Shown: positions 8,627 through 45,729, counted from the first letter of the stretch. The stretch: 64,000 bases of DNA from Podarcis melisellensis (GCA_964234715.1 OZ174282.1), one strand, 5' to 3'. The notes: a model not told the origin generated them from the letters alone. Translations and numbers: made by a program.

Positions 8627-11600
8627 ATGTCGCTGAGGCGACAGACAGCTCCCGGCTTAGCCCTGCTGCTCTGCGCCCTGTGCAGGACTGCTGTGCCTGT
8701 CACCACGCCTGAGGCTGCGCTAAGGGGGCACCAAGGACATTGCTACCAGCTTGCCCAGGAAAGACTGGCTTTTGAGGATGCCCAGGCCGCCTGCGGCCGA
8801 TGGGGAGGGCACTTAGCACAGGTCCCTTGGGAGGTGACAGGGACGTGGGGTGCTCTGAGAAGGAGGAGGGGGCAGCTGAGAGGGCCCTCTGGAGGCTGGT
8901 GGGTCTCCAAGGGCCCAACCAAGCCTACGGTGGCAGGTAAGTCAGTCCTGTGGGGGCACCAGAGAGGGCTGGGCAGAGGTGGGAAGTTGTTTCTACTCCA
9001 GAGGGTGGAGGGTGCGTCCTGGTTTCTATCACAAAGGCCAGGTCCCTTTACACAGCTGACTTGGCTGTGGTTAAAGGCTGGGATTTGGGGAGCCACATTG
9101 AGGGGCAGGGTGTGGAGGTGGGGGGCACTGTGCTGCAGAGAGCTGGCTCTTTTGCTTGTAGTATAGAATTCTGCTTATTTTCATCTGCTCTGTCAAGGGC
9201 ATACCACCCCGCTCTGCCTACTGTGGTCAGATCTTACAAGAGGGCAAGGCCCTCACCTTGCCCTGCCCAGCTTGCCATCATGCCCATGGCAGCCTCTTGT
9301 GTCTTTGCCCAGGAGCCCAGCCTCATCTGCATGGGGCTCACCATCAGCCCCCCACCTGCACCTTCCTCTCCAACTTGGGCTTGCTGCAGGAGGCTACCGG
9401 GCCCACGTGCCGCCAGAGGCATCCTTTCATCTGCGAATTTGGTGAGAGGCCAGCTGGGCTGCCAGGGTGGGATTGTGACACCTCCACTCCACCCCATCCC
9501 TGAGGACAGAGATTGCTCCTCCTGACCCAGGAGGGGCTCCCTTTCAGGGTGGTCCTTTTTGCAGGTCCTGTGGAGGGAGGTGAATGCCCAGTCAAAGTGG
9601 CCAGGAGTGCCAACAGCTCCAGGCCTTGGCAAAAACAGAAGGCTCAGCTGGTAGGTGATGGTGGCCGGTTCTCTTCCCTCCAAGTCCAAAGCAAATAGGC
9701 TTTCCCTCCTGCTGCCTGAAACCAAACTCCAGCAGATGCACCAAGGCAGAGGATGGGGGGGGGCAATAAAAACAGCCTGTCTGCCACCTCTTAGCCACCT
9801 TCCAGACAATTCCTTTGGGCATGATTCCTGAGCAAGGTCCTAACAGGGAACCCTTGGCCCTGCCCCTTCCAAGAAAGCCTATTGGGTGACATATCCTACC
9901 TGGCACAGTGGCACTGCTCTGTCCCACTCTTTTTTCTCTGTCTGCCTCCAGGATCTGACCTCCATGGGGCGGAGGCCACAAAGGCTCATGCGGCGGCATC
10001 TGGGTGATAAGCAGAAGTACCCAGGTGATGTGGGGATTTATTGATTTCTGAAATAATGCATTGAAGAGTAGGTCATCTGCAATTATAAGCAATTGTGAGA
10101 GGCTGATCATCTTGGGTCATTCTGCTTATTTTAACAAACCTTTTAAATGCCCTAAAATAATATTTGTGGGGCTGAAAGGGGTATTTTATCTTATTTCTCA
10201 TAGACCATCTTTTCCAAAAGATTGTAGATGTCGGCACAACTAAAAGATATGCTTTCAATCTGCCTGTACAGAATTACAACTCCAACATTTACCAATGGTA
10301 TTTGTTTAAGCTGTGCCCAAGGGGCAAGGCACCCATGATTAACTGTTTTTAACAAGTTTTATTTCAGATAAACTTTTATTGCCATGTTCTACCTCTTCCA
10401 TGAAAAGAGCCTGAAGCAATGCTCAGGATGAAAATAAGCAACTGTAATAATGTAAAAGCGGGAATATAACTAGTAGCCAGTGGTTCCCTTATCATGAGGC
10501 TGATCCTTTTGCCGGTCAGGGCAGTGGTTTTCCCCTGAAAGGAAGCAGCTTGTTGTTGAGACAGGCTCACCGCAAGGAGTTTGTGTTTATGGAGGCCAAA
10601 ATGCCTGTTTCTCCCTGAGGGGAGAAAAGACTCTTGCTCATACTTCTCCTCTTGCCTCCAGAGACATCAGCAATCAGGGAGGCCTTGCAGGATGTTGTTC
10701 CCAGGACCTGGCAGCAGGTAAAAGAGCCCCACTGGGAGGGAGTATCTGGGGAGGGGACCCCCTTCAGCCCAGCCCCATTGAGGCCCACAGCAGAGCCACC
10801 AACCTTCCTCTGGCTCAAGACAGCCAACCTCTCTTCTGGTGGTTAGCACAGGCCTTATGTAGGCTGGGGATCCCTTATTCAGTGATCTGCATTTGCCTGC
10901 CAGCATTTGAGCCCAAACTCCTGATTCTGCCTGCAGGAGCTGCTCCAGCGACTGACACTGCCGGTGAACAATGGTGCCTGGAGTGCCTCTGAGCTGGTAT
11001 GATTGGGCCCATGGGGAGGGCGGATGCCCCAGAAGGGACTGAGCCCCAACTCCAAAGGCTGTGTAGCTCCCATGGGGAACCTGAAGAAAGAGTCAGGCCA
11101 AGTCCTAAGAAGCTCTTTCCTCCAAGAGAGGTGATGGGGAACATCTCATGGAAGGAGTCGAGGGACCCCCCCCATTAGTGCTGAGGGTCTTGGGCAATGC
11201 ATGGGCATGGAGGAACATTAACATTACTGTATGTGCCTTTGCATGCCAGGAAGAGGAGGTGGGGTTTCTTCAGGCTGTCAGTGAGGACCTGCTGAAAAGG
11301 AGGCCTCCAGCCTCCCCACACTGGCACCTCCTCAACCTCCTGGCAGTCCATGGCACCAGCCGGCTCCTGCAGGTCATTCTGGGCCCCTGCTCACCCAACG
11401 TCAACATCCAGGTGAGGATATGCCACACTCCCGGGTGCCCTGGTGGGGAGGGACAGGCCGGTGCATGGGTCCCTTCATCCCATAATGCCCCATCTTGGAT
11501 GGAGATTGAGTCCCCAGTAACTGCCCACTTCTCCCTCCAGCAGCATGAGGCCCTGACTGGCACCCTGATGCAGATCCTTCACAAACTGGAGCAAGCTCTT

Positions 11601-14600
11601 CAGGAACTGGGGGGCAGCAGTGATGCCATCACCATGGAGACGCCTCTCATCAGCATCTATACACAGAGGTAAGCTACCAGGCTAACGGGGAAGCTTGACT
11701 GGTCTGGGAAGGGAAGGGAGAAAGATCTTGGCAGGAAGTGTCCAAGGGAAAAGGCCTTGAGGTAGCCATCTGCCCTTCCCTCATCATGGCAGCTGGCTCA
11801 CATTTGCCTGGCTGTCCTGCAGATTGGCAACTCTCCTGAGGCACCCTGATCCCAGGCACCATCTGCTGTGCCCTGGCTCTAACCCTAACTCTCTTTGTCT
11901 CCCTGGCTCAGGGTGAACTCTTCCAGGCTGGGCAATATGGCGTTCTCCTTCCCTGGCAACCCATGGGCAGCTAGAGTCATTTTGCCAGAGCAGTCTGCGC
12001 TGGGCGCCGTCATGCCACAGAATATCCCAGTGGATGTGCAGGTCAGAGGGAGCAGGAGTGTGTGGCTGGCCCTCTCCTTTGGACTGGGCACAGGGGCCTT
12101 CCCGTTCCATGAAATGCAAACTCTCCTCTGGCATCTGCTGCTACCCCAGGAGGAGAAGGAAGGCAGAGAGCACCCAGGCAACGAGTCACTTGCTGTGCTG
12201 TGGAATGCACTGGGGCCCAGCACTCAGAAGTGACTTGGCTCCTTCAGATCAGCCTGATGATGCACCCAGAGGCATCTTCCCTCCCTCCCTCTTCTGGAGC
12301 CTCATGCCTCTGGGTTGGACTCCAAACATTTCATGACACCCCCCTTGCCAACACCCCTGCAACCAAGGCCCCCTGACTTGGCCCTACTCAATCTACCTAC
12401 CCAGTGCTTCCAACAGTAAGCAGCCATGTTTCCAAAATGGGGAGCAGAGCGTGAGGGGGGGGGGGAGCGCCCAGCCATCCTGCCGAGTGTGGCCATGTGG
12501 CCGAGCAGGCATGGCTGGTGGGTCAGGCCCCCTCAGCAGTGGCGCTGCCCTTTCTTCTTCTCTCCCTCTCTCTTTAGATGGTGAGCTTCCTGGGCAGCCC
12601 CTTTCCCCCGAGCTCTGGGGAAGGGGTCACAGGAGCTGTAGCTGAACTGAACCTCCTTTCTGAGGGCAGCCAGATCAGCGTTAGCAACCTGAGCACCCCT
12701 GTCCAGGTATGTCCTGCCTAGAGACTTTGGGCTGAGTGGAGCCTTCCTCCCTGTAAGGGGGTGGGCTATTGAGCATCTCCAGAGGGCAAGGACAGCCCTC
12801 CAGGATCATTTCTCATGGCAGGATCTCATCGTGTGGAGATCAGCTGGATCAGCCACCAGGTAGGCCAGCCGCTTAGCCTGGGAGAGCCTACAGTACAGGG
12901 TCTGGTCTCTCTGTCATCATCCTTCCCTCTCTCCCGCCGCAGCTCACCTCCATCAGTGAGGCTGCCTCTGCTCCAGGTGAGAGCCTGAGGCAGCTGCTCA
13001 TCTCACTGTGGTGGTGCAGTAGCAGCCAGTGACATCCTGCTCTCTTTTCCCATCCCAGATTTTCCTGCCCCGGGTTGGGCCTAGAGCCCCTGCCGAGCCA
13101 GCTGCCTTCCTCTCTCCAGGGGAGGCCCTCCTTCTGACTGTGAACGTGACATGGACAAGGGGATCCCTGATGATCCACGCTCACCTGGACCCGGTGGGGC
13201 CTCTGGAGCTCTTCCTGCAGCCAAGCGAGCAACTCCGGGAGCCCATTGAGCCCAACGTTGGCCTGGGTATAGCAGGGGGACAGAAGAGCTGGCTTCTGCT
13301 TCCACTTTTGGCCTGGGGTGTGTGAGGACCTCTTCCTAAAATGGTTTCCCTTTTGTGTTGCCCCCCCCTCCGCCGCCCCCATCTCCTGCAGATGGCTACA
13401 CTTGGCTAGTGAAGGAGGAAGTTCTTCGTGACCTGAGAGGAGCCCTTCAGTTCCTGGTGGTGCCACTGAACCTCTCTGCCAGCCAGGGTCCTGCCACCTT
13501 ACATGTCAGCACCTATGGGATCCAGTGCGTCTCCCGGCACCTGCCTGATGCCCAGTGGCGAGAGGCAGGCTGCAAGGTGAGTCTTGGCGTTCAAGAAACA
13601 AAGGGAATCTGGGTACCTTGCGCCCCCTACTGCCAGAGGCAGGGAAGAATCAGAATAGCTGCCTCTGGTCCTTAATAACACTTCTATCCCATTTCAAGAC
13701 CATACTGCCTGCTTCTTTATTTAAAGCATCTGGATCTCTGTTTTGTGAGAAATATCCAAAGTGATCTGCTGCCCAGAAGGGCCCTTAATCCCACCCTGTT
13801 TGCAGGTAGGAGAGAGCAGCAGCCTGGCGGAAGTCCACTGCCTCTGCACCCACCTCTCCTTCTTTGGCAGCAGCTTCTGGGTGGCGCCAGTCCAGCTGGA
13901 TGTGGTGCGCACAGCAGAGTACTTTACCCAGGTGAACAAGAACCCAGTTCTGGTCGTGGTCCTGGGAGTCGTCTATGCCCTCTACTTGGTGGGGGTGGCC
14001 TGGGCCCGCTGGTTGGACACACGCCCCCTGCACCAGGTAAGTTGCTGGGGGTGAGAGGGCCGGAGGCAAGGGGGGGTCTGGCAGCAAGCAGCACAAACTC
14101 ACAGGCCCTTGGCAGCTCTTAGGTGGTGATGCTCTCAGAAGGGCAGGTCATGCAGCAACAGCCACCATTTGGAGACCGAACTCTTGGAGGGTCTCCAGCG
14201 GCTCTCCCACGCCATGTGGAGAACAAAGGACTCTGATCTCCTCACCCTCCACCCCTAAAGGGTGTGGCTGGCTAGGGGCGGGGAAGGCTTCTTATTTTCT
14301 ACAAATGGTCACGACTGCATTTTGCTCTCTATAAACATACAGCTGAGTGAGATGCAGCTAACTCTGTTCTGTCTAACGATTCCATGTGGATTTAAGGTTT
14401 GCACATCTCTTCGCCAGCAAAAGAGATCCCCTTATTCTGGTCTTCACTGGGGCCAAGTGGGAAGGACAAATGTATGTATGGGGCCTCAGCGCTCTCTGCT
14501 CTCCTGCGCTGCTCCATGGCAGAGCATGACCCTAGAAACGCCACCCCTCACACCCCTCTCCCTCTCCCAGGCAGGGCCAGTCCTCCTGTCCGATGATGAT

Positions 14601-17600
14601 CCCTGTGCCCAGTATGGCTACCTTCTCCAGATCTCCCTGCATGGGCAGCAGAAGGCCCCCGGAGGCAGCCCCTGTGTGAGTGGTCTGCCCTGAGTGATGG
14701 AGGGGGTGGGGTGCCTGGTCTTTGCCCCAGATCTCACCCAGCCCTTTCATCTCCAGCAGGTCTGCATCTGCCTGCAGGGATCGTCTGGTGTCAGCAAGCC
14801 TCGGCGCCTGCCCCTGGATGCCAGCCTCTTCCTCCTACGGGAGCCATACCCACTGGGAGAGCTCCAGAGCATTTGGTTGTGGCAGGAGCTCCACCCCGCC
14901 CCACAGCTGCCCTGGTCAGTCTGCCCAGAAGTAGGGTGGGCGGGTGACATCCCACTTGGAGACATTGTGCTGGCATGCGGGCACTGTCCACCTCCCATGG
15001 CTTGGCTTTGGGTGCCAGCCTGCCTCTGCTGGACATGCCACAATTCTCCCTCTCTCTGAATGGGGCAGAGGTGGTTATTGTGTCAGGGTGGCCATCTTCA
15101 GGCACCCTGAGGAGGTGGGGCTGGGGGCGGGTCAGCAGCACACCTGGCACTCGTCCAGCAGGGAGGCCTCCTGCCTCTGCCTGACAGGACCTTCTTCTAA
15201 GTGGAGCACTAAGAGCACTAGCCTCCTGCCTGGCACTCATTACCCATCCCCTTCCCTCAGGCATATCGCCTACATCACAGTGCGAGACCTGCAGCAAAGT
15301 AGGAGGTTCCATTTTTCTTGCCAGCCGTGGCACGTCCCAGCAGCAGGGGCCCCACACAGCACTGCCCAGCATTTCCTTGCAGCTCCACAGCACCAGCCAA
15401 CAGCATTCTGGTAGGCTTACCAAGAGACGGGGGAGTCTGTTTGGGTGACCTCAGTCCCCACCTGCCCACTGTGCATGAACTTAGCAGGGATCTCCGAACC
15501 GCCTCCTCCCAGCCAGAGACTCCAGCTGTCTTCCTCCTCTGGCTCTCCCATAGCCTGGCCCACCCACCCATCTTCCGCTCTCTCTGCAGGCCCATCTTCC
15601 GGCAAAGGACCCTGAACGGGCTTCGGGAGGAGCACACAGTGCTGACAGTGCTGCTGACCCGGACAGGCCACGGGCGGCCCGTCACGCGGGTCCAGGGCCT
15701 CTCCTGCGGCTTCTGCCTCCTCCTCTGCTCTGCGCTTGTCAGCCTCATGTTCTGGGAGGTGCCCCACGAGTCACCCGAGCTCCTGAGTGTTGGTAAGGGC
15801 TGTGCCACATGGGATATCTCCCAAGGGCCACTGGCATGGAAAAGGGAGCTGTGCAACTCCTCTGCTCCAACTCCTGCCAGTGGAGGAAAGTCCCTCCTGC
15901 CACAGCTGGAGGGAGAAACACAGTCATACCCTTTGGGCCGGCAGGAGGGCGGTTCATGCATTGTATTAGGACTTCGGAAGAGCCTGGGTGCAGCTGGATC
16001 AGGCCAACTGATGCCTCCTGGGAAGCCCACAAGCAAGGCTCCTCTCCTACATTTGATCCCCTACCCCCTGAATCCGGAGGTATCCTGCCTCTGATTGTGC
16101 AGGTAGCAGTTGGTGCCTCCTTCCAGCGTCCCTGGGGCACAAAGAGTGGTGACTGGTAGGTCCACTTGCAGGCACTTTCCCCCCCTGTTGATACACAGGC
16201 AACTGCTTCTCCCTCTCCTGGAAGGACATCATGATCAGTGTGGAGAGTGCCTTGATTACCTTCCCCGTCAACTTGCTCCTTGTATTCATCTTCCGCCACG
16301 CTGAACCACGCAAGAGCCATGCAAAGCCTGGCCTGGCAACGGCTGTGCCAAGTGCCCCTGCCAGCCCAACAACCCTGGACACTGTGCATGAGGTAGGAAC
16401 AAGAGCTCTCCAGGACCCAGGACATTTTCCCCATTGTGCCTCCCCTTGGAATAAGGCCATGGCTGAGCTGGCAGTGGAGAAGAACCCCCACCCGATCCCC
16501 GAAGCCCCACGTCCCCCAGGATCCTTCTTGCACCAGTGAACTTGGTCCCAGGGAGACGTTTTGCATTTGCAGATACAGCAAGCACTGGCTTGCCAGAGAG
16601 TTTTCTCTGTGGCAGTTATGGGATGGCTTTTAATAGGTAGGAGAGGATATGTTAATAGTAATTTATCCCTCCAGGTGCCCACATTTGTGGGTTGAACATA
16701 CAAAGAGATCAGCTTATCGCTTCGTTTAAAACACAGGGCTGAGCAGAGTTCAAAGTCTCATCCTCAGCAGAAAAATAGAAAGCATAGGAAAAGGCTGTGA
16801 AGCATTCATTAAATTCAGTCCAGCCACAAAGCAAGCTGGTTGCCCCTTAACAAAGAACCAGACACAGACTGAGAAGTAAGTTTAAAATATGTTTACTTAC
16901 TCATAGTCATGCAATTGTTCTCAGCAGCAACAGCAGTAAAATAAATGCAGGCAAAATACTTATATTTACAGTATGAACAGCTTGAGGCATGTGGCCAATG
17001 CTGGAGCGATAGGATATATGTCTGCTCCATCACTGGCTGAAGAGAAAAGAGAGAGGGAAGGAACAGGAAATACTTTGATTCTTCATTTCCAAGAGAGGAG
17101 GGAAAATGACCTCACACAGAACCATCTCTACCAATTACATTTCTATGGTCCGAGTCTCTCTATCAATAATGTGACCCTATGGTCTTAACCCTTTCACATG
17201 CTAACTCACAAAAATATGCATTGTTAGATTTGGCTGCAAATCTCCCACAGCACTTCTCCCATCTGCTACATCTTCTTGTGCCCAGTTTGCCCACCTTACC
17301 CTCAGCCTGTTGGGTGCATTTATGCCCCAGTCGCCTGCCACTCTCCCGTCTACCCATGCTTGTCTTCCCCTCCCTAGAGCCTGCGCGGGGCAGTGGAGAC
17401 GCTGAGCAAAGCCAGCAAGCAGAGCCAACAGCTGCTACATCCCGACATGGACCTTGAGGAGCTTCTGCAGTGGCTGGCTCGTTTTATCCACCCTGATCCT
17501 GGGGAGGAAGAGGAGGCAGCAGGTGAGAGCCCAGCCATGCCTGCCTGCCTGCCTGCCTTGGGCAGCCCTGCTAGACCCCCAGAGGATGGTGACGCTGCGG

Positions 17601-18975
17601 CTTCTGCTTGCAGGGAGGGAGCCCAAGATCTCCAGTGTGGCACCCAGCCCTGATGCGCTGCACCAGACCTACTGCAACCGCTACCTCCTCCTGAAGCTGC
17701 GGCACATCTCCCGTCTCCTGGGGGAGCTGGAACCAGGAGTCCCGACAGCCAAGCACCCTCCGGCTCTGCAGCAGCGCGTGGAGGAGATGGCCAGGCGTCT
17801 CGAGCTAGCAAGCCCCATCCAGTCTCGCTCCATGTAGGTAGCTCAGACAGGCTCTGTGAGCAGGCAGGGAAGCCTACCTTGCAGAGCCTCTTCCTCATGC
17901 CTTCTTCTTGTTCCTCCACAGCCGAAGGTGGCACTTGCCCTGGTGGGGCGCCTGGGTGGGGTGGGCCCTGCTGGTCTCCCTCAGCGCAGTGGCCACCTTC
18001 TTCTCCTTGCTCTATGGCTTCCACTATGGCAAGGAGAGCACCGAACGCTGGCTCATCTCCACTGCCATCTCCATGGGCCAGGCCCTCTTCGTCCTGCAGC
18101 CCCTCAAGGTACTTCCCAGCCAGGCTGAGCAAACCCAGCATTCCAGGGGGGCCTTCTCATGGGAGGTCGGGTTGCCAGATCTCTAAGTCTGATCTGAAGT
18201 CTTCAGGTTTGCCTAGTACCCTCCAGGTGGCAGGTGAAGGGCTTGAATCGCTAGATGGGTGAGAGTTCCAGTGGTGTGTGTGTGTGTGTACACAGAAGAC
18301 TGTGTATAGAGGGTGCACACTTTGGACCAGCAGGAGCTGGATGCAAATTATAGCATAGACACTCTGGAGGACTACCTCCCCTCTTCTCCTAATTAACCTC
18401 TGTCTCTAGGACCCTTGTGACTATACCAGGGTCTGTGCCCCTGACACCACCAGGGGCAGCCCCTAGGTCTCAGGTTTGGGCCCTGAAATCTCAGGGTCTG
18501 TGATACTCCTCAACTGGCAACCCGTAGGGGAAGGGACATCTCAGCAGCAGCAGAAATCATGGTGCACATACTTCTTCCTCATCTCATGTATGTGTCTGCC
18601 ACCTGCCTGGCTGGGACAGGTGTCTGGCATTGGAGCACTGCAAACACCCACTGCATCTCCTCTCTTCCTCCCATGAATTTCAAGGGGGTGGGGGAGAATT
18701 TAACCAAAGCACCCTCACACATACACCAGTTTGTTGTGGTGTTTTGGCACAAAGTGAGGGGCTTGGCTCACCTGGAGAAAGGGAAGCCTGCAGATGCTCC
18801 CTCTGTTTTATGGATGGGGGGAGATGTTCCCTCTGTTTTATGGATGCGGATCCTGCCCATCCTTCTTCTTCCATGAAACCCAATGCAGGTGATAAGCTTT
18901 GCCATTTTCTGTGCCCTGATACTGAAGAAAGCAGAGGATGAAGATGAGGCAGCCCTGGACCTGGAAGACCGGTAA
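8627..18975 (+). CDS. Polycystin-1-like protein (PKD1L2/PKD1L3 family) lacking the cation-channel module; ~1110 aa, 22 coding exons
   Basis: Phase-consistent GT-AG exons with no internal stop: 8627-8936, 9313-9441, 9565-9650, 9952-10024, 10662-10717, 10937-10996, 11250-11411, 11541-11668, 11912-12041, 12578-12706, 13059-13266, 13392-13576, 13806-14036, 14571-14675, 14760-14914, 15261-15410, 15590-15792, 16199-16392, 17378-17522, 17614-17833, 17922-18108, 18889-18975(TAA); total 3333 nt. Signal peptide LALLLCALCRTA; C-type lectin (CYQL..F..AQAAC...GGHLA...WW...C...C..RHPFICEF); GPS CVS....W...GCK..HCLCTHL|SFFGS; TM1; PLAT-like; TRVQGLSCGFCLL; LPWWGAWVGW...LYGFHYGKES..RWLIS...QPLKV. The four small stalk exons (9565-10996) are the least certain. 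Confidence 0.85.
16686..17249. mobile_element. solo-LTR-like element in intron of upstream polycystin gene
   Basis: TGTGGG...CCCACA termini and similarity blocks with 1242-1690; AT-rich insertion in a GC-rich gene. Confidence 0.5.
18793..18846. repeat. 30-bp tandem duplication
   Basis: gatgctccctctgttttatggatg..gatgttccctctgttttatggatg just upstream of the terminal exon. Confidence 0.7.
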
Positions 18976-20347
18976 AGGGAGGAAGGAGGCTTGCAGAAGT
19001 GGAAAGGCAGGATGAATTGAAGGAGGGAAGGGGAAAGGGGCCTCTCCAGAGAGGGTGGGGACCTGGACTGCCTCCAAGTAGAGAAGGGCAAAGGTGGCAC
19101 TGAGAATGTCCCGCACCAACTGCAGAAAACAAACTCAAGTTCAAAAAATTCCTTTCAAGACAGGGGCCAGGCAAGAGGAAGGGTTTTCAGTACTACGTCT
19201 GTTCCCTCTTCCTCCTCCCGTAAGGGAAGGTTATGCACACACAGAGAAGAATCACTCCTCTCCACTTTGGATCGGCATGACTAGGAGCCCACCTGGACCA
19301 TTCCTCTGCTGCTTTGGGTGGCCCGGCAAGGCATGCAGGCTTGGTGGAGGAATCCAGTTGCTGGTGTGGGCACCTCTGGTTGCCAAGAGCAGGTAGCCCA
19401 GGGCCTGCTCTGGGAGAGGCAGAGGATGCAGAGTGGCTACACTAGGCATCTCCTGGGATTGCTAAACAGGAAGGAAACACATTGAACTGGAGCCCCTGCA
19501 AGGGCAGGACTGGGACTGTCCCCTGTGGAAGGGGAGAAGACTAAAAGGTGGTGACTGGCATGTGCACAGTGGGGGTGGAGAGGAGTCTGCCTTCCTAACT
19601 CTTGACACTCCCCGTTAAAAAGATCTTGAGTAGTCTCTCTTTGCTCGTGGCCTTGAAACGCCACTGCCAGTCAGACTAGAGCAGACATATTAGGTTACCA
19701 GTAATTTAACCATCCTAAGGGAGACTGCAGCTCCAGGACTGGGGCCAAGGGAGCAGAAAATATGCTGGGAAGCAGTCCTAGGGCCCCATCCTGACCCATG
19801 TCTTTGACCTCTGTGATTGCAGGCTGTGCTCTTTCCAGTGATGGGAGGACAACTTTCTGCGAGGCCACCTTGGCTTTTGCCATGCCATGTGCCCAAGACC
19901 TCCAATCAGCCTCTCCAACATGATGTCACCCAAAGGCCAGGACCATCTCTCTGGAGGAATGGGAGGGCAGAGCATGGGAGTCCCATTCTGTAACCTGCCA
20001 ATGGAGCCAACCGTGAACTCACTGAGTGTTGAAAGAGTTGGGATGCAACTCAAGCTTGCTGAGGGTTTGCATGAGGTTAAATTGGATAGAGAAGGGAACC
20101 TCCAAGATTGCCTAACTGCCCTTTGATCTCTGTGATGACCTTTCCTTTACTATTAGACTGATATTCTTAGGGTTCCTGACAGTGACCAAACTTCCTGCTT
20201 CCCCCTCTTCCTTCTGAAGCTGAAGGAGAGAGGACATCTATGGATGTATCTCTGCCGAGAGTAAAGAGCAAGCATGACTCCCTTGCAGCTTTAAGATTAA
20301 TTAGCTAAAACTAGTAACTCTTTTCTATCCAAGTATATATTTCTTAT

Positions 20348-20353
20348 AATAAA
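20348..20353 (+). terminator. candidate poly(A) signal of upstream polycystin gene
   Basis: First AATAAA after the TAA at 18975; GT-rich element (tgtgtgtgattg) ~35 nt downstream. Confidence 0.5.
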
Positions 20354-21504: not shown

Positions 21505-24500
21505 ATGGGGCTCCCTATAGGGATGTGGCTCTGGCTCTGGGCCGCACAGGTCTCTTCGGAGGAATCGGAGCCCGCCTGCCTGCCCGTGGCAGGAGAGGAC
21601 TGCTATAGGCTGCTCCGGCGGCCACAACCCGCCTTTGGTGCAGTGATTTGGTGCGGACGATCCCACGGCCGGCTCCTCCACACGTGGAACCAGCAGATCC
21701 AGGACGCCCTGCGCGACCGCCTGGACGACAGGAGCAAAACCTGGATCGGGGCTGCAGCAAAGGCGCTCCCAGAAGTGAACCACCCTGGCAAAGGTGAGAG
21801 CGGGGCGGGGGCGCAGAGGCCCAACAGCAGCACCGCAGAAGAGGGGCAGCAGCCGCCAATTCCAGTATACTCTCCCAGGATGTGTGTTATTCCCCACTCA
21901 GCATCTCTGACTCGCCCAGACGCCAAACCCCTCAGGGCAAGACCGCCACCCTCCCTACACAAGGTGGGACCACCGTCTCCTCGTGGGGATCGAGGCGGGG
22001 CAGCCAAGCTTCTCACTTCAAGGGCCCAGCCAGGCCCTGCAGACCCTTTCCTCCCTCGAGGGACCCCGCCCTCCAGCGTTTCAAGGACACCCAGGGTGGC
22101 AGCCATCCTCCCATGCCAAGCCCCGCTGCTGATGGCTCAGCTCTGCAGTCTGTGACAGGCAGTCAAGGAGTGGGGAGGGTTAAAAATAATAATAATGCAA
22201 GGCTGTCCGAGGGTTTGCTACCAGGCACTCACCCTATGTAAAGGCTCCCCTTAAACCACTTGCCACCACTGGGAGACTCTAGTCTGGAGAGGGAGCGGAG
22301 CCCTACAGGGGGAGCTCAGGGCAGCCTCAGCCGGAAAGCCTTATCCTAAGAAAGTCCCCCAAAGGCAAACAACTGGCGGGCTGGTGCTGAGTGTGGGGTG
22401 GCGGGGAAGAGGGGTAACCCTGTCTGATGGCGGCGCCTACTCTCCGCAGACCACTGCAAAGTCCTCGTCCGGAATGGGGACCAATTCTATACCAGGAGGG
22501 AGGAGTGTGACCAGAAGCACTTTTTCATCTGCCAGTCTGGTGCGTGAGTCTCCCCGCCCACCGGGGTGGGAGTTCGTGCCCTCATTCCGCACCCACAGGG
22601 GCTTGGGCAGGGGGCCTCCAGCTTCAAAGAGCGAGAAGGACCTCGTGGCTGAGCTGAGGATGAGACTCTCTGGACGGCCCCCCACGAAGCACGCCCTTTC
22701 GAGGTGGCTGCAACCCCGGAGGCAGGGCCAGGGTCAGGCTCTCCCCAGGCGGTTGGGCCGGGCCGTCGCAGGTCCTAGAACCGGCCCCTGCCGCCCAGGA
22801 AGCGCCCCTTCCATGAATTCTCCCGAGCTCAACCCCTTCTGCTCTCTGTCCGCTACAGGCCCCCCAAGGACGCCCCGAGAGACTTCCACGTCCTGGGTGG
22901 TAAGTTCCCGCCAAAGCAGGTGCCTGCGCAGCCGTCGAACAGGAACGGGCGAAGGCTCTCTAGGCCGCCGTCGCTGCGCAGCGCCCCCTGGACTGACTGC
23001 AGCGCACCGCCGAGCAGATGGCCCTGGTGACTTTCTCTCCCTGTCTCCCAGAGAACGACCTGCCAGCATTTGAGGTGCGGCCCGACGGAGGCGACGCCCA
23101 TCCTCACCGAAGAGCCGACAGCGACTGCTCCTCTGAGCGCCCAGGCCTCCGCCGCGACTCCTCCGCCGCCCAGTGCTCCTCCAGGAAGCAGCACAGTTCG
23201 CCAGCCGACCACCGCTGACATCCAGTCATTCCTTGGGACCAGGCCAGAACTCAGCACTCCCCGCTATTCGCCGAGCAGCCCCAAGTCGGCATCCAGCACG
23301 TGGCCCACCAGCAACAGCAGCCAGACCCGCCCCAACTCTCAGACCTCAGCCCCAGAGCCCAGCACTCAGCCGCTGCCCACCAGCAAAACCACCTCGGGGG
23401 GTACCAAAAGCCACGAGTCCAACACCAGCCCAGACGCCTTCACCTTCAACCCTAGAGACTTCTCCCCTGAGGACCAGGGGAAGGTAGGGAGACATCTGGA
23501 CTGGCACCTGCCCCTACCCTGGTGGCACCTTGTCCAGACAGGCTCTTCTCTCTCTCCGTCCCATACCCCACACCCTGCTCCAGAGATATCAGGAGGCATG
23601 GGGGGCGGGGCGGCGTTGCAGGATTCTTCCTTTGCACCTGGAAAAACCAACGCTGAAGTGCAGATCAAAGATGAGTGTGACTTGTATATGATTTCCCAGG
23701 GATCCAAAGTCACTTAGTGAGGGATTTCCAGACTGGTTTTGCCCACCGCAGAAAGGGGGGCAAGTGGCTGTGGGGGGGATGTGTGGCTCCCTCCAGCCTA
23801 GCTGCCTTCTCAGGTCTTCCCCCTATAGGGTAGAGGAGCCTTCCCAGAGTTAGAGATTTAGCGACAAGCTCCACTTGCAGACTCACTGACAGCGTAATAG
23901 GGCAACCAGGCCCCCTTCTCCCCCAGCCCCTCTCACTCAGGGTCTGTCCCACAGGCCCTAGAGAAGGTGCTGCACCAGTTCAGCCAGGCTGTGCAGACCC
24001 CAGACCACCCTATGGCACTGGAGCAGGCAGCCCGGATGCTGGAGAATTTGACAAATTTCCATGCTCTGCTTTCAGATGATGCCCAGGTACTGGCATGTGG
24101 CAGGGAGGGAGGGAGGGTGGGTGGCTGGCACCCCTGATCTAAGGGTCTGTCCCCTGCGGCCTATTCTCCCAGTCCTTGGTTGAACCAGGCTCTACCCAGG
24201 CTATGTACAGAGGCAAGCCTGCTGCTTGGCACAGCCAGCCTCGCCCTTGCACCCCCAAATCAGCCTTGCCAGATGATCAGCCCTGCCTTGTTCCTACAGG
24301 CCTCTGCCAGCCAGGCACTCCTCTCCCTGAGCTCTCAGCTACTGAGGGACCACCCTGCCAGCAATGCCTCCTGCCTAGACCTCGCATCACAGGCTCTTTT
24401 CCAGGCCCTCAGCAACCTCCTCCAAGCCTCAGGCAGCCAGACACCCAGCTTCGGCCCGCAACAGGTGGGGAAGAAAGAGGATCTGCAGGGGTCGGGTGGA

Positions 24501-27500
24501 GAAGGCTATTCAGAAGGATGGGGTTGCCAGCTCAGGCCTGCTGCATGGCTGGGTCTCATTCTGAAGGCACCCCCTTTTGTCCAGGCCTTCCCATTGCTCT
24601 GAGCCCATGGGGAGGGAGCTGAGCTTCCCAGCTCCCCGCCCTGGCTCTGCCCAGCTCCTGACCACACCTGGCCTTTCTCTGCAGCAGGAACCAAAGGTCC
24701 TGGAAACAGCACTGGAAGCCCTTCCTCTGATCCAGACGGGGCTCCTGTTGGGAAGCTCCACCATGGAGGAATCCACAGTAACTGTGGTGTCTCCTGTGCT
24801 CAGCACCACTCTCAGCAGGTACCAGTCTCCTCTCTCCTAGGCACTGAAGAAGTGGGGGGGGGGGGCTTGCTCAGGGCAACTGAATGAATTGTTTGGTTGC
24901 CAATTACCTATTATAATCCTTTTGGTACGCAGAGTAAGACATTGTTCAGATAATGCATCTTGGTTAGGGAACAGACTTTTATGAGCTACAGTCTCACACA
25001 CAGGGATGTTTGTAGTTGAGATAAATAATAAAGGAGTCTATTACATGATTTTTAAAATTATTACTACATTTATAACCCACTTTTTCGCCAAAAAGCTCAG
25101 GATGGCTCACAGTTGTCTCCTTTTCTCCATTTTATTCTCATAACAACAACCCTGAGAGGTGGGTTGGGGCTGAGAGATAGTGACTGGCCCAAAGTCACCC
25201 ATTGGGTTTCATGGCTGAGAGGGGATTTGAACCCTGGTCTCCCACGTCCATGTCTCGCACTCTAACCACATAATTGGATAGAAAAGTTCCAAGTTCCAGC
25301 CTAACAAGTCTGTACTAGAGCATGATAGCCATTCTGGCTCCTATTTTATCTCAGAGGATAATTCTTCTTGGAGAGAGAAATGTGAGAGGAGCAGGAAGTT
25401 GTAAAACAGAGTGCAGCCTGAGAATATCAAAAGAGATAGAGAGGTGAGCTGAAGAAGTTAATGACGCAAAGGTAGTCTGGGAGTCTGGAGGTCTCGAACT
25501 CTGTTCTATCTGTCCTAACCTACGCAAGACCCCTCTTCTGAAAATGGAGTTGCACTCAAACTTTCAACAGTAACCCCTCTCCGCACTCCCTACCAGGTGT
25601 GACAAAGCCTCCCTGTCCCATGCCTCCTTCCACCTGCTTCAGCCAAGGGGCCTGAACGTAACCTTCCCATCCAGCTCTGCTCTGGAGCCAGTTCTGAGCC
25701 AGCACCCTCAAGTACAAGTCCAGGTAAGGTGGTAGTGGCTTGCTGCCCACTGGGTCCTTGTAGGGGGACATAGTGCAGGGCTGGCAGGGCATGGAGGTGG
25801 GGCAGAGGGCACCCCCACAGTTCGCTCTTGCTCTCATCTTCATTCTAGGTAGCCTCCTTTGCATTCAACCCTTTCCAGCACCTGGATGGGAAGCCGATCA
25901 AAAGGATTGCAAGTATCTCTCTCATGGCCAGCGAGGAGTCCATCGGTGTCCACAATCTTGCAGAGGAAATAGAGGTGAGAATGGATACTGTACTGGAAAG
26001 TTCTCTCATCAGGGGGACTCTTCTCTCTGCACCCAAGTGGCATGGAGAAGCAGCGCTGTCCAAGGTCCAGCGCTGGATCAGAGATAAGCACTTTGTGCTG
26101 CATGGCCTGATGGGAGACAGTATGTGCTCAAGGGCCAGTGGGGGGCACTTCAGGGCTGACCATGGACATGCTGTCTGCTTCCAGATTGGGCTCAGTGCTG
26201 AGGCTAGTGCTGAGGCCCCTCACACTCACTTGACTGGCAACGTCAGGAACTTTGACATTGTGGTAAACATCACATCAGTAGAGGATGCCCTGCTAGTATT
26301 GGTGGAATCCAGCACAGTGGTCCAGATCACCTTGCACCTGGGCCTCCAACCTGAGCCCAACAAGAACAGCAGCCTCCTCAACACCACCCTGCCCAGCAGC
26401 GGATGGCAAGAGGGTGAGGACTTGTTAGAAGGAAGCTAGAGGGCAGGTGCTGCTTTGGGACTTCCTACTGGAGCATCTGATTGACATCTGGGAGAATAGT
26501 GCTGGACCAGAATGGTCATTGGCCTGATGTAGCAGGTTCTTCTTATGCTCATACATACAACACAATGCTGCATGTATCCCCTTAAAAGTAAGTCTCATTG
26601 GAGTTCAGTGAGGTGACTCTCGGGTAAGTGGGCATAGCTTTGAGGTGTTAACTTCACCAACTGTTCTGGGTTTCAGCCATAAGACATAACCTATATGGCA
26701 GGCTTCCTCAAACTCGGCCCTCCAAATGTTTTGAGACTACAATTCCCATCGTCTCTGACCACTGGTCCTGCTAGCTAGGGATCATGGGAGTTGTAGGCCA
26801 AAAACATCTGGAGGGCCAAGTTTGAGGAAGCCTGCTATATGGGAACAATTTACCTCTATAAATAAAAAGGGAAAGTTGCAAAAGTATACAGATTGAATTA
26901 GCTGTGTTTCAATTATTTAATTTCCCATTAAATTCATTTAATTGCAAATTAACATGGTGTAGTGGTCAGATTTGCACTGTAGGAAACATCAATGGGAAAT
27001 TAGTTTTAAATCGCTTAGTTAAATCAGCCCGTTTCTTCATTTACATAATTGACCAAACCACTTTGATTTAAATCTGTGCACCTGGGAGTAGGCACAGAGG
27101 AAGGGGCTTGAGGAGCTGGGGCCAGGCAGGACTGTGTCCCCAGTGGGGGAAGGTGTGGGTGTGGTCCCTCTCTGCTCTCTTTGACTCACTGCTCTTGCTT
27201 CAGAGGGTACCTACACATGGGTGATTCCTCCAGAGGAGCTGCAGCATCATGGCCTGGGCACCTACTACATCTCTGCAGAGGTGGCTCCCCTCTCTCAGGG
27301 CCCCTGGAACCTCTCCATTCACACCATCATCTCCGGATGCTACTACTGGTCCAGCCAGCATCAGGCCTGGAGAACTGATGGTTGTCGGGTATGCAGTAGG
27401 GTCAACCAGGCCAGAGGGCTGTTGGGCAGGCAAACAAGCCTTTGCTTCCATGCTGGGAGGGAAAAAAAGTAGGGCAGAATGTCATGGGGAACCAAATGGA

Positions 27501-30500
27501 GCAGAACTTTGGGGACCTCATCCTCCTGTGTTGGTTTCTAATGCATCAGTGCCTCCCTCCCAGGTGGGCTCCCAAAGCACCCTCCATAGCACCCAGTGCT
27601 TGTGCAACCACCTCACCTTCTTTGGGTGCATCGCCTTGGTCCTGCCACACCTGATTGACCTTCACAACACTGCAAAGCTCCTGAGCACTGTGGGCCAGAA
27701 CCCTTCTGGGCTGGCCTTGCTAAGCAGCTTGTTGCTGGGCTATGGAGTTGCCCTTGTTTGGGCTCGATGGAGACAGAGAACGGATGTTAAGAAGGTGAGG
27801 GGAAAGGGCAAGCAAAAGATTTATGATGGTTGTTTGGGGTTATTAGCATTTGCAGGCCAGAGACACTCCCCCCATCTGCCCTCATTCAGGCCATTCTTGT
27901 CTGATGTGCTGAAATGAGGAACAATGAGATATTTATCCAGCAAACAGCTGAGAACCAGACACCCTGGAAAAGCCGACTTGCTGAAGTGGGGCTTGGCCAT
28001 TTCTAGGGCCACCCACCCCATGTGTGTCTCTCCCCCCTCCAGGTGAAGGTCACAATCCTAGCAGATAATGAGGCCACCGCCTGCTTCCCTTACCTGGTCC
28101 AAGTCTTCACAGGCTACCGCCGAGGGGCTGGGACTTCTGCTAAGGTAGGGGAGGGTCTCACTTTCCTGCAGGCCCACTTTGTACTGTTGATGCTACAAGT
28201 GCTGCCCATCAAGTTCCGTGACCTCAGGCTCCTGCCCACAGAATCTGGGCCGCGTCTGGCAGATCTCTCCCTATCGGGGAGTGGGTGTGTGGGGTGCAGG
28301 CTTCTGTGTGACTGGCTGCATGCAAAAGCCTGTCTTTGATGACATCCTTCATGTGCTCCCTGCTTGGGCAAGGAACTGAGGAAAGGAAGCAATCCATGAA
28401 CCCCACCCAGCACCCACCCTCTTTTCCCTTTCCTTGATTAACCCCTTCTCCCTCCTTGGCTTGAGGTTATCCTGACCCTCTATGGGGCAGAGGGCCGGAG
28501 TGAGCCACACCTGCTACAGCACCCCCAGGGGCCCTCCTTTGAGCGAGGTGGGCGGGATGCCTTCCTCCTTGCCACTCAGAAGTCCCTGGGCAACCTCCAC
28601 GCCATCCGCCTCTGGCACGACAACACTGGGCCCAACCCCAGCTGGTAAGTCCATGGCCCAGCAAGGGCTGAGGGTGGGGGCCGAGAGGGTGGGGTTAGAG
28701 TGAACCAGACTGCAACTGGATGCCAGGCAAGGAGGAGGTTGGAAGCACACGACTGGCGTGGGAGAGTCCGTTGGCAGCACCAGACTTTATCAGATGCTAG
28801 TAGGCAAAGGGACACTGCAGCTGGCATACCTAGTCCTCCCATGCCATGGGGTTGTGCTGCCAGGACCTGGATACATGCAGAATTCCCAGGTCCTCAAAGA
28901 TACCTCCTTTCAAGCCTATGCTGAAGAAATTCACAACATCCCTGTCCAACTGTAGCAAAACTAGCTGCAGGTCAGTTGGACATTTCAGGGGGACGATGGA
29001 ACTGTGGCATGTCTTGTCCCACCCAAGGTTTATGCTCACCATGTTAAAGGCCAGCTTTGGCTCCAGAGGCCACATTGTCATGTAAAATAATGCATTATGA
29101 CCCACCTTTGGTCTGAACCCCCAAACATAAAGGATACATCAGGGAGGGAATACCTTTCCATCTCCAGTCTTTTCCCAAAGCTGCTGGGCAAACGACACTT
29201 TATGTATAAGTTAACTTGGAGCAAAGCTTCCCTTGTGCTTGAAGGAAGCCACATGCAGCTCTCAGCTTTGGCAAGGTGATGAGGGCAGAAGGAAAAGATC
29301 CCCACTGCTTCCCTTTAACCTGCAGCTCTTGAGTGATGGGGGAGTGGGGGCAGATCCCTTGGCTGCAGCTAATGGGCACCACATGACTGCTTGGCAGTGC
29401 CACCCATGTGTGGGCAAATGACTGAAAGGCCTGAGCCTCCTGCAGGTTTGTGAGGCGGCTGGTTGTCTGTGACCTGCCTGCCAAGAAGAAGTGGCATTTC
29501 CTGTGTGACTCTTGGCTGGCAGCTGACTTGGATGACGGCCATGTGGATAAAGTCTTTGCTGCTGCCTCCGAGAGGGATCTCCTGTCCTTCAGGTAAATAT
29601 GAGCACCACCTGCCAGTTTGTGGCATCTCTGGAATGTGTTTTTGCCCTTGGGGTGTTTCTGCCCCTGATTTACCCAACAGGTACCTTGCCTTTGACTGAA
29701 TTATGCTAAGAACACCTGTGTGAAAAAGCAATAATCAGACATCAAAAAATAAAAGTCAGGGAACGGCAGGCTCTGTCCCAGAATCTGCTTGGAATGACAA
29801 ATCTCAGACCCAGTGCAGAAAGTTCCTTTGACTATACACAGAGAGAGGGCCTTTCTCTCCCACCCATCTGGGAGTTGGGTCTTCCTTCCAGGTCAGAGAG
29901 TGTGATGCAGCTTCCAGCTCCTCTCCATTCAGAAATTAGGTGCAGCAGGAAAGGTCCCACCCTGCTCCTGGCCCTTGACCCTCTCTGGCTCAGCCCCCAC
30001 CAAATACATCTCTTATCCCACTTCACCAGGTACCAGTTCTGGTCAGGGCTGGTGGACAAATTGACGCAGGAGCACCTGTGGCTGTCGGTGGTGACCTGCT
30101 CGCCCTGGAGCCCCTTCACCCGTGTGCAGAGGCTCTCCTGCTGCCTGGCCCTCCTCTGCTGCACCTTCCTCATCAACATCATGTTCTGGAGAAAAGAGGC
30201 AGCGTCCAGAAGCCCCGAGGCTGGTGAGTCAGCTGCCAGCTGGAGACTAGCATAGCCAGTGCCTTTCCTTGTCCCCCACCCCAACATGATGCAGGTGGGC
30301 GCTGGGCTGGGGGCAGGTGAGTGGGTGGGGTAGGGAAGAGGCTGGTTTCCCACCACTTGCCATGGCTCACAGCCCCCAAGGCAGAGCCCTAAAGAGTCCT
30401 GTATTTTTGCTCCTGTCCCCATGCTCCACCTTCCATGCATAGGGCTTGTATGTCTTTAAGTAGCGCTGAGGATTCTAAGCTTCACAGTGGAGCTGGGAGT

Positions 30501-33500
30501 CCCCCTTTGGACGCCGCCCAGCATTTTTGGCATCGAAACTGCCTCAGCCACAGCAGTGATCCTTCTGGCCACCCCCTCCTCCTGAATGAAGGTCTCTGTC
30601 TGCCACTCCTCTCTCCCCCCCCTGCTCCCGAGACAGGGCCTTTTATGGTGACTTGGCATGAGCTGCTGGTGAGTATGGAAACCGCCATCTTCCTAATGCC
30701 AGTGAGCCTACTGATCAGCCACATCTTCCAGCTGGTCCAGCCTCCAGCCCCAAAGCCTCCTGCTGCCAGCTCCGAACTCCTGCAGACTGTGATGCCCCCC
30801 AAGCAGGTGATGCCCATCACACAAGTCAAGCAGGTGAGACCCCCTCCTCACAAGTCCCTCCAGTCAGCAAGAGGTTCTGAGCGGTCAGCCTCCGCCCTGA
30901 TGGGTGCTTGGCACTCTTGCCCTGCTCTCTCCATTGCAGGAGCTGGAGGAGACCCTGGGCTTCCTCTACAAGAACATCCTCTGCCAGTGCAGAGCCATGG
31001 ACAAGTTCCCTGGGACTTGTGAGCAAGTACCAGAGCTTGTGGCTGCTCTGTGTGACCTCATTGAGTCCCACCTCCAGCACCAGAAGGACCTGGAAGGTCC
31101 CCCTCAGGGTAAGAGTAGCTTGCCTTGGCAACGGATGCAAATACCACTGCCTTCCTCTCAGACAGAGAGTGCGCCACCCTTCCTCATGCTCTGTGCACCA
31201 GCTTGCACCTTTGGGGAACTGAGCAACCCTTGACTCAGTTGGAAAAGGAGGGGGAATTAAGGCTCTGGAGGGTGAGAGTGATTCCTCTTTGTACTTGTTT
31301 CCAGAGAGGCGCTTCAACCTCCACAGCTACCTGAGCCATGTGCTGAATGACTTGGGGACTCAGCTCTGCAGCCTGGATTTGTGCAGCTTCCCTAAGCCCT
31401 ATGACCATCTGCATGCAGTGGACCAACTACGAAGAGTCCAGCAGCACCTGGAGCAGCAGCAGGCCCAGCCCTGGCCTAGCCCTGAGGGGCCTGGCAGGTA
31501 GCCCCCATCCAGAAGCTCCGCTCATCTATCTCTTCCCCACTCTCCTGGCCCCATTTCCTGGTAAAATTTGGCAGAGATTGCTCCAAACCCAAAATAATAC
31601 TTGGGGAACAAGATCCTCATTTGTAAGCCACTGTGAAACTCTGCGGCATCTACTGTACACACCCTACGTATGTATACAAAGAAACACACCTAGCTAAGGT
31701 CAAAGTTCCTTCCATGAAATAGCTTGCAGGAAGAAACTAACCAGATGTCTTCACACTCCAGGGAATGCCTTCAGGGGCTTGGCGAGGAGGCAGGTCACAG
31801 TTACAGGAGATTGAAGTTGCCCCCCCCCCCAGGACTCACCAGTGAGGATGGGGGTCGCATATGCAGCAGAGCGTTCAAATGTGACCCAGAAACAGAGTGA
31901 GGCAACAGCACAAGGTCACCACCGCAGTCAAGTTCAGGCAAGGTACAATGCAGCAAGGCAGGGCAATGAGAATCAGGAAATAAGGCACCAGAGACCTGTA
32001 TTATTTCCTGCAACTAGAAGGCTCACTAGGGAGGCTTTATATGCTCTTGTCTCCTAAACTACACTCAACCACAGCCACTGACTGCTTCCTCACAAGCAGA
32101 CTGCTGCCTCTGATTCCTGAGACTGGCAGGGGGAGCTGTTCCACCTCCTGTTCTGACAGTTCCAGGAGTTTTTCATCAGGTACTAACCTGGAGGGCCCCT
32201 GGATCTATAGGGTATCTGGTTCATCTTCAAAGGACTCTGCGTCTGGTCCCGTGTCACACGCAGACCCAAAGCCAGCCAGTTTTCCCAACCCACCCAATAA
32301 TGGTCTTTTTCTTAACTGCCTATTGCTTTTTCTGCTTGGTCTGTGGGACATTTGCCCTCCCCACTGCACAGTTCCCTCCCTCCACTGGTGTTCCCAAAGG
32401 CTGAGGTGCCATTTATTCTCCTGTCTCTGTGTCTCAGGCCCACCGGGCCCAGGAGCGAGCTCAGCAGTTTCCCACTTGAAGACCCTGACAAGGAGAGGCC
32501 GCCGTTCTCCCACTGTCTCCCCGGGAGATTCAGCTTTGCTTGCTGGCTCACAGTGGGAAGCATCAGCCTGGTTTCGGCCTTCTTCACAGTGCTCTACAGC
32601 CTAGAAATGAGCAGGGACGAGGCTGGGCACTGGGCCATCAACATTCTGCTCTCAGTGCTACAGAACATCTTTGTAATGCAGCCCCTGAAGGTAACTTGGT
32701 CCTATCTGGGGTGCAGCTAACCTCTCCCCACACCCCACACCCTTGCCAGAGCCAGCCTCTCCCCTCTTCTCCCTGCCTCTACAAATGTCTTTGGTGTTCT
32801 GTGAATCTGCAGCAACACAGCAGGGTCAGAGGTCTGCAAGGGTCCTCAGACCCCACCTAAGTCCAGACTCTGGGTTTAATGCTTGTCCATCTCTCCCCCA
32901 ATCTGCACTGGTAATGTGTGTAATGTTACTAACCATTTGTGGTGGGGCACCTCCTGCATATTCTGCTAAGAGGGGCCCCAGACACCTGCCCTGTGGGCCC
33001 CCCCCAATGGCAACCCTGTTCTCCCTTCTTCCCAGGTGTTGGCTCTGACCTTCCTCTTCTCACTGCTGCACAAGAGGGAGTTGTGGAAGGACAAGGGGCA
33101 GGAGCAGCAGCTCTGGTGGGCCCTGGGCCTCGTCACAGGTAATTCAAGCTCTCCAACCCCACCCCACCCCACACCGCGCCTCCATCTGCAATGCTCGATA
33201 GGGCATCTGCCTGAGCGGCCTCTGACCAAAGGGGACCTTTTTCCTCTTGCTTGGGACTGACGCCAGCTTTCTTCTCCCTCTAGCAAGGGGCCTACAACTG
33301 GAAGCTTATGGGCGGAGAGACTGGGCAGACCCATCTTACAGACCCCCTGCCCTCCAGCCAATGGTGCGGCCAAAGGAACGAGCCTTGAAAGACAAGAAGT
33401 TGTACTCCTTGATCAGAGAGATTGCAGGTGAGACCAGGCGCCAAGGCCAGTAAGGGCATGGATGGGTTGTGCTCCCTCCCCGCACCAAGCAGGGGTGAAA

Positions 33501-45395: not shown

Positions 45396-45729
45396 GGTGT
45401 AGAATTCCTGCCAAGAACACAAGAGAGAAAAAGCCTACTGTCATGTGTGTTAAAGGCAGACAGCTAGCAGTTTCCTGTGTAGATATATTCTACTTGTAAT
45501 ATTTATATATTGCTTTGCACATTCAGAGCCATTCCAGAGTTATTTAGAATAAAATACAAAATACATTTAAAATTCAAAAAAGTGATACAAATTTAAATCA
45601 CCAAAAGTGCTCAAAAATTAATCTAAACACAATATTCCCTGCTCTACACAAGCAGGACACCAGTATTCTCAAAAATCTCAATAATCAGCACTGTCCAAAT
45701 GCTGAGAATAACTTTTTTGCGTGGTTCTA

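Follow-up and report, generated by a model that had tools for sequence, protein, structure and literature searches.

In channel complexes of 1:3 composition, polycystin-1-type proteins are understood to be the odd subunit; PKD1L3 is the partner of PKD2L1. The role of the first five transmembrane (TM) helices and of the PLAT and GAIN domains in these proteins is still debated. Here we describe a short polycystin-1-like gene upstream of PKD1L3 in a 64-kilobase (kb) stretch of the Podarcis melisellensis genome (GCA_964234715.1 OZ174282.1), hereafter the window, which contains no runs of N. We label this gene, together with its orthologs, S. The closest described gene is the zebrafish "partial pkd1l3" (ENSDARG00000091803), which lies beside dhodh and encodes 1083 amino acids with a C-type lectin, GPS, and PLAT but without the channel (England et al. 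2017, PMC5318412). Genes of this kind in ray-finned fish were interpreted as the remnant of a PKD1L3 being lost and were excluded from the trees of that study, which were built on the channel domain; zebrafish carries pkd1l2a, pkd1l2b, and the short gene together (PMC5318412). In sharks, pkd1L4.1 and pkd1L4.2 fall outside both PKD1L2 and PKD1L3, and knowledge of this group was termed poor (Mayeur et al. 2024, PMC11979771). In an incomplete literature search, we found no paper on the short gene in tetrapods and none that separates it from PKD1L3.

We consider it likely that S is a half-length polycystin-1-like gene without a channel, belonging to an old lineage whose origin is a tandem duplication with PKD1L3, earlier than the ray-finned fish/tetrapod divergence. 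The truncated architecture would have been kept since then in squamates, frogs, bichirs, bowfin, and teleosts, and the likeness of S to PKD1L2 would reflect retained ancestral sequence, PKD1L3 having changed more quickly. In the window, the gene consists of the following parts.

8627..8938, + strand: first coding exon, with the signal peptide and the start of a degenerate C-type-lectin-like domain (tblastn with Zootoca P0168 residues 1-104, 86.5% identical)
9303..13576, + strand: ectodomain exons, GAIN domain (collinear tblastn high-scoring segment pairs, P0168 residues 101-552)
13806..14036, + strand: exon with the GPS motif (CLCTHL/SFFG) and TM1 (peptides, spliced joints, open frame)
14571-14675, 14757-14914, and 15261-15410, + strand: three PLAT exons, first cytosolic loop (spliced joints, open frame)
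15590-15792, + strand: TM2 exon (joints, hydropathy, frame)
16199-16392, + strand: TM3 exon (joints, hydropathy, frame)
17378-17522 and 17614-17833, + strand: exons of the cytosolic loop between TM3 and TM4 (joints, frame)
17922..18108, + strand: exon coding for TM4 (LPWW...) and the first part of TM5 (...QPLK) (joints, hydropathy, frame)
18889..18971, + strand: exon with the remainder of TM5 and the acidic tail (KKAEDEDE...LED), donor 18971/18972 (joint)
18973..18975, + strand: TAA, the stop of transcripts that would retain the last intron (...LEDR), following the donor 18971/18972
19823..20353, + strand: terminal exon, with five further codons (LCSFQ), TGA at 19839-19841, and then the 3' untranslated region (loose contig ends, frame)

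The start codon was placed at 8627 by collinear tblastn with the Zootoca ortholog P0168, which has a hydrophobic N-terminus. Borders upstream of 13392 are approximate, and the exon 13392-13576 is exact. Between 13392 and 19823, S has 11 introns, every one GT..AG and each backed by a spliced joint in one to four runs (four related lizards, contigs over 13380-19379); the joints 13576/13806 and 18108/18889 were both found in runs X1, X5, and X6. Because the contigs skip every intron at canonical sites, these runs are hardly genomic and are probably complementary DNA (cDNA). Joined from 13392 to 19841, the exons give a single open frame of 625 codons ending in ...LEDRLCSFQ, and database orthologs of S end in ...LEDRLCS(L/F)Q. 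The peptides quoted by the first-pass annotation all lie on the + strand where it had put them: HLSFFGSSF at 13851-13877, TAEYF at 13911-13925, NPVLVVV at 13941-13961, LPWWGAWVGWALL at 17935-17973, FFSLLYGFHYGKESTERWLIS at 17998-18060, QPLKV at 18097-18111, and ISFAIFCALILKKAEDEDE at 18892-18948. None of them stems from a chance open reading frame. The end it gave for the gene, 18975, is the last letter of the TAA after the donor.

At the 3' end, loose contig ends at 18972/18973 (X1 and X6, two organisms) carry on into the exon at 19823, their letters being the sequence right after the acceptor at 19821-19822. One X6 contig is unspliced over 18943-19379, across the donor, and gives the alternative end at ...LEDR. 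The stop falls six codons past the TM5 tail in the spliced form and zero codons past it in the read-through form, and both forms encode nearly identical truncated proteins. An AATAAA poly(A) signal lies at 20348-20353, 3' of the S stop. The S gene is intact and transcribed. A (GT)n microsatellite is present within its last long intron, at 18269-18300.

These 3' ends bear on whether S and PKD1L3 might be one transcription unit, with the S exons serving as an alternative 5' module on the PKD1L3 channel exons. Three fused database predictions (P0002, P0003, and P0016) point in that direction, as does the second polycystin gene of bowfin, whose 5' half carries an in-frame stop. We regard a single unit as very improbable, given that contigs from two species splice from 18971 to the terminal exon with the stop six codons in and the poly(A) signal after it, while another contig reads through to the TAA. 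PKD1L3 also has a separate start at 21505, with a signal peptide and a lectin exon, and NCBI models from six squamates share the ...SxQ tail end of S. Two of the fused predictions, Phrynocephalus P0002 (2765 amino acids) and Pelobates cultripes P0003 (2401 amino acids), are whole-gene fusions of S and PKD1L3. Database models fuse or misname the pair elsewhere too (Anolis P0323, besides P0002 and P0003), and two models carry two GPS regions.

The S protein consists of GAIN/GPS, TM1, PLAT, TM2-TM5, and a short acidic tail followed by the stop, with five TM helices by hydropathy. Pfam recorded no polycystin or channel domain (PF08016, PF20519) in any S ortholog, bowfin P0016 being a chimeric model, and no SUEL lectin (PF02140) or REJ (PF02010) in S orthologs, both of which are recorded for PKD1L2. 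The GPS is at residue ~375-550 in S proteins versus ~1290 in PKD1L2. The first-pass annotation had described a short ectodomain lacking the SUEL lectin and REJ, and this held: Pfam shows GPS, PLAT, and a weak C-type lectin only. The GPS motif, with its HL|S site intact, lies at 13839-13877, immediately before TM1. In Pfam it scores weakly in lacertids (exon 13806-14036, E = 0.051; P0001, E = 0.0012), and orthologs from frog and fish give E = 1e-8 to 1e-10. PLAT is significant in S orthologs, from 1.4e-7 in Sceloporus down to 1e-23 in bichir, and Lectin_C gives E = 0.004 and 0.002 in the frog and teleost orthologs, respectively, under the Pfam score cut-off. Single S exons gave only a sub-threshold GPS in Pfam, and PDB sequence searches with the GPS-TM1 and TM4-TM5 exons returned nothing relevant. 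In the alignment, the Cys, His, and Leu columns of the GPS and the core PLAT and TM residues are invariant.

An AlphaFold (AF2) model of the Podarcis muralis ortholog P0155 was generated from a 28-row alignment, with a mean predicted local distance difference test (pLDDT) of 70.7. From the N-terminus to ~401, the model shows a helical subdomain and a beta-sandwich whose last strand is the GPS, followed by a long helix at 408-447 corresponding to TM1 and by a second beta-sandwich at 467-580 corresponding to PLAT. From 580 onward there are four further membrane helices, the second and third of which are separated by a helical insert on the cytosolic side. In Foldseek, the ectodomain hit GAIN domains of adhesion G-protein-coupled receptors (GPCRs; 4dlo_A, E = 7.8e-7) and the sandwich at 467-580 hit lipoxygenase and lipase PLAT domains, while the model as a whole hit the polycystin-1/2 complex (E = 2.2e-4). 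The C-termini of teleost and frog short proteins (P0052, P0423, P0174, P0162, P0008) read -HTL, -DTL, -TAL, or -TMF and resemble class I PDZ-binding tails, which the squamate -S(L/F/H)Q tails do not.

Relatives were collected by an exhaustive profile-free search with the GPS-TM1 exon and by cluster look-ups. The gene corresponds to the NCBI "polycystin-1-like protein 2" of Podarcis, Lacerta, and Zootoca (936-1209 amino acids), and identity between the Podarcis muralis protein and the window frame is 97.5%. Short proteins of the same architecture (~950-1120 amino acids) were found in other squamates (Pogona, Sceloporus, Phrynocephalus, Lerista), frogs (Pelobates, Rhinoderma, Pseudophryne), bichirs (Erpetoichthys, Polypterus), and teleosts (Albula, Pleuronectes, Seriola, Stegastes). 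No mammal, bird, turtle, or crocodilian ortholog stood among the 150 best cluster representatives, so a loss of S in these groups is only suggested. Canonical PKD1L2 is present in the squamates Hemicordylus (P0270) and Elgaria (P0300), and in squamate and frog annotations "polycystin-1-like protein 2" names both the short gene and canonical PKD1L2.

We built trees on the GPS-TM5 region of S together with PKD1L2, PKD1L3, PKDREJ, PKD1, PKD1L1, and shark, lamprey, and invertebrate proteins; the zebrafish short protein was left out of trees and alignment. In a 113-row tree (mixture model, quick search), support is 99 for S, 99 for PKD1L2, and 100 for tetrapod PKD1L3, and S joins PKD1L3 at 82. A 65-row tree made in the same way, including the window frame and a stitched version of the second bowfin gene, gives the S clade at 100 and places the second bowfin gene with tetrapod PKD1L3 at 98; shark genes join these two at 90, and S is sister to that group at 92 by the Shimodaira-Hasegawa-like approximate likelihood ratio test (SH-aLRT). 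A 36-row tree (LG+F+G4; SH-aLRT/ultrafast bootstrap, UFBoot) recovers the S clade at 100/100 and a split of S, PKD1L3, and sharks from PKD1L2, lamprey, and invertebrates at 97.9/96. Teleost short proteins group with lizard S at support 100, and branching inside the S clade follows the order of the species tree. The PKD1L2 clade (99-100) contains the Hemicordylus and Elgaria proteins and excludes S, and the tetrapod PKD1L3 clade (100), likewise without S, holds the orthologs of the neighbouring gene in the window. PKD1L3 is most likely the sister lineage of S, judging from these trees, and such a placement agrees with where S lies in the genome, at the PKD1L3 locus.

Hypotheses were compared on the 36-row alignment by approximately unbiased (AU) tests in IQ-TREE, each forced as one clade. 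The same strand, the adjacent position, and the shared start with a signal peptide and a lectin-type exon might suggest that PKD1L3 was duplicated in tandem recently, within lizards, and that S is the copy, since diverged and now without its 3' half. This can be set aside almost entirely. Over the GPS-TM5 block, S is 26.9% identical to the PKD1L3 type compared to 37-38% to frog and bichir short genes, and the best paralogous exons of S and PKD1L3 in the window are ~36% identical. S forms a clade with fish and frogs at 100, the neighbour falls inside tetrapod PKD1L3 at 100, and the same gene pair is present in frog and bowfin. Forcing squamate S with squamate PKD1L3 worsens the log-likelihood (lnL) by 201 (AU p = 1.6e-42), and forcing tetrapod S with tetrapod PKD1L3 worsens it by 37.5 (AU p = 0.010), a value from an incomplete constrained search in which the likelihood may be slightly underestimated. 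The first-pass annotation had proposed an old third lineage and no recent lizard duplicate, and had taken the neighbour to be of PKD1L3 type; both proposals stand, and the grouping of S as sister to the adjacent squamate PKD1L3, the result it had named as decisive against it, failed decisively in the AU test. Because frog and bowfin carry the same tandem pair, the split between S and PKD1L3 predates the ray-finned fish/tetrapod divergence, and the phylogeny indicates that the S lineage is older than that divergence, at more than 400 million years.

Where the same annotation needs correcting is in taking the TM4-TM5 pattern as PKD1L2-type: LPWW/LYG.xYG/WLxS/FFALxLKK plus an acidic run is not diagnostic of PKD1L2. 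Every S member has these motifs in the alignment, as do PKD1L2, sharks, and lamprey, and a hemichordate has part of them; the diverged form is that of tetrapod PKD1L3. Since lamprey and sharks also have the motifs, they are ancestral, and the higher BLAST score of S to PKD1L2 (281 bits compared to 180 for PKD1L3) and the NCBI name reflect this shared ancestral sequence and are no evidence of kinship. An origin of S from PKD1L2, either as a truncated copy or as a sister of the canonical gene, can draw on that score, the name, the shared motifs, the identity of 32.6% to PKD1L2 versus 26.9% to PKD1L3, and a Shimodaira-Hasegawa (SH) test that does not reject it (p = 0.445). We nevertheless find it unlikely. 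The trees place S on the PKD1L3 side (97.9/96; SH-aLRT 92), the locus between DHODH and IST1 is that of PKD1L3, and S lacks SUEL lectin and REJ. A clade of S with PKD1L2 costs 13.4 lnL units (AU p = 0.0125), so that on these data it is weakly rejected.

The surroundings of S in the window consist of two further genes.

21505..38184, + strand: full-length PKD1L3, with C-type lectin, mucin-like Ser/Thr/Pro-rich exon, GPS, PLAT, and channel (tblastn with Podarcis muralis P0316 and Zootoca P0318)
40523..45434, - strand: IST1, the conserved downstream neighbour of PKD1L3 (six-frame matches to bowfin and plaice IST1, 55-98% identical; Pfam Ist1)

The exons of PKD1L3 are mostly 88-100% identical each to P0316 and P0318, Pfam PF08016 and PF20519 are recorded for P0316, and the two PKD1L3 peptides quoted in the first-pass annotation lie at 27699-27734 (12 residues) and 32580-32639 (20 residues). 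The mucin-like exon, at 23031-23714 between the lectin and GAIN regions, has no counterpart in S. The gene order in the window is S, PKD1L3, and IST1(-), with S head-to-tail upstream of PKD1L3 and IST1 tail-to-tail with PKD1L3, as likewise in bowfin and plaice. No match to DHODH was found in the first 8.6 kb of the window, upstream of S. In the frog Rhinoderma, the order is DHODH(-), S (1031 amino acids), and PKD1L3 (1837 amino acids); in the plaice Pleuronectes, it is DHODH(-), S, IST1(-), and MPP10, without PKD1L3. S therefore sits at the DHODH-...-IST1 locus of PKD1L3, with IST1 in the window and DHODH directly upstream in frog and plaice. A repeat at 20723-20816, between the polycystin genes, and at 45129-45900, near the IST1 5' end (69-81% identical when translated), is probably an interspersed repeat.

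In the bowfin Amia, the order is an S-type gene, a second PKD1L3-like gene, which has lectin, GPS, PLAT, and channel exons of its own, and IST1(-). The database model P0016 was considered as a full-length S with a channel and rejected: the locus holds two tandem genes, and the chimeric model joins the exons of the S gene to the 3' channel exons of the second gene, whose 5' half is skipped. This second gene (Amia calva, 24000-34600) has an in-frame stop in a conserved PLAT exon at ~27585. Decay of the 5' half, a mistake in the assembly, or a genuine fusion transcript could lie behind the stop and the fusion.

All S proteins end 15-30 residues past the TM5 acidic run, a uniform end point that fits a single old truncation. 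When the window is compared with the four related transcriptomes, synonymous changes make up 19 of the 28 exonic differences listed; set against 460 synonymous and 1415 non-synonymous sites, the ratio of non-synonymous to synonymous differences per site (pN/pS) is ~0.15 (binomial p = 1.6e-6). As read from these differences, S is shown to be under purifying selection among lacertids. This bears on the proposal that S is a decaying remnant, a transcribed pseudogene heading for loss. The absence of the defining channel domain, the degenerate lectin and PLAT of lacertids, the fast squamate branch, and the lack of mammal, bird, turtle, or crocodilian orthologs among the best matches would all suit such a fate. 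It is nonetheless improbable, as the open frame and the stop position have been kept in three vertebrate classes since before the ray-finned fish/tetrapod split, the GPS and core PLAT and TM residues are invariant, synonymous changes are in excess, and spliced transcripts with canonical splice sites occur in four species.

Several points weigh against an old, constrained lineage allied to PKD1L3. The placement of S with PKD1L3 over PKD1L2 is only moderately supported, at SH-aLRT 82-92 under the mixture model and with the SH test not rejecting the alternative (p = 0.445); the mixture-model trees came from a quick search, one constrained search was incomplete, and the placement of the shark genes in the 36-row tree is poorly supported (38.6/56). 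The pN/pS ratio covers 28 exonic differences among those listed, with 117 more differences outside them. In the 65-row tree, the squamate stem is very long, at 0.95 changes per column, and PLAT and the lectin of S are under Pfam thresholds in lacertids; constraint was therefore relaxed or shifted at some time. The overall rate of S in that tree is somewhat above that of PKD1L3 and several-fold above that of PKD1L2. That the runs of related lizards are RNA is a guess, for which the spliced contigs argue as cDNA. Finally, the link to the zebrafish "partial pkd1l3" is by length, domains, and synteny, with the zebrafish protein outside the tree.

Without TM6-TM11, S would be unable to fill the polycystin-1 position, the fourth position of the 1:3 complex with PKD2-type subunits. 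For the same reason, it would be expected to work through its ectodomain, GAIN cleavage, PLAT, and TM1-TM5, most likely either in modulating channel-forming relatives or as a surface receptor of GAIN/PLAT type. We lean, by a small degree, towards the broader view that the N-terminal half of polycystin-1-type proteins is a free-standing functional unit, which bony vertebrates have carried as a separate gene next to PKD1L3 for over 400 million years and which acts without the channel half. Such a protein might, for example, regulate complexes of the PKD1L3/PKD2L1 type or serve as a surface receptor that is cleaved. If so, a natural channel-less paralog under purifying selection in fish, frogs, and lizards would isolate that half of polycystin-1. 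The fish "partial pkd1l3" would then be the S gene, neither an ortholog of mammalian PKD1L3 nor a dying PKD1L3, and true PKD1L3 would have been lost in ray-finned fish other than bowfin. Two different genes currently stand under the name PKD1L2 in squamate and frog annotations.

Compared with the described systems, S is nearest to the fish "partial pkd1l3", which shares its domain set, its dhodh neighbour, and the length of the teleost S members (1083-1084 amino acids). The teleost S member is most likely the same gene as the zebrafish one, equated by these features. In part, the S lineage thus appears to be known already, through the published teleost gene and the NCBI annotation of the lizard gene. 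The remnant interpretation of the fish gene differs from what is seen here, where the S lineage coexists with full-length PKD1L3 in lizards, frogs, and bowfin; this coexistence makes S a distinct paralog rather than the ortholog of PKD1L3.

PKD1L3 resembles S in locus, strand, the start with a signal peptide and lectin-type exon, the short ectodomain without SUEL or REJ, GAIN/GPS, PLAT, and TM1-TM5, and differs in having TM6-TM11 with polycystin and channel domains and the mucin-like exon. PKD1L2 shares the ancestral TM4-TM5 and GPS-TM1 motifs; unlike S, it is ~2450 amino acids long, with a C-type lectin, SUEL lectin, REJ, and channel in Pfam. Shark and ray genes, which may be those named pkd1L4, lie near S and PKD1L3 in the trees and may be orthologs of S, of PKD1L3, or of both; unlike S, the shark proteins have their full length and include a channel. 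The adhesion GPCRs (BAI3, latrophilin) offer the best structural match for the S ectodomain in their GAIN domains, and in both the autoproteolysis motif immediately precedes the first membrane helix. In those receptors, however, a 7TM bundle follows, whereas in S there are five TM helices with PLAT in the first loop.

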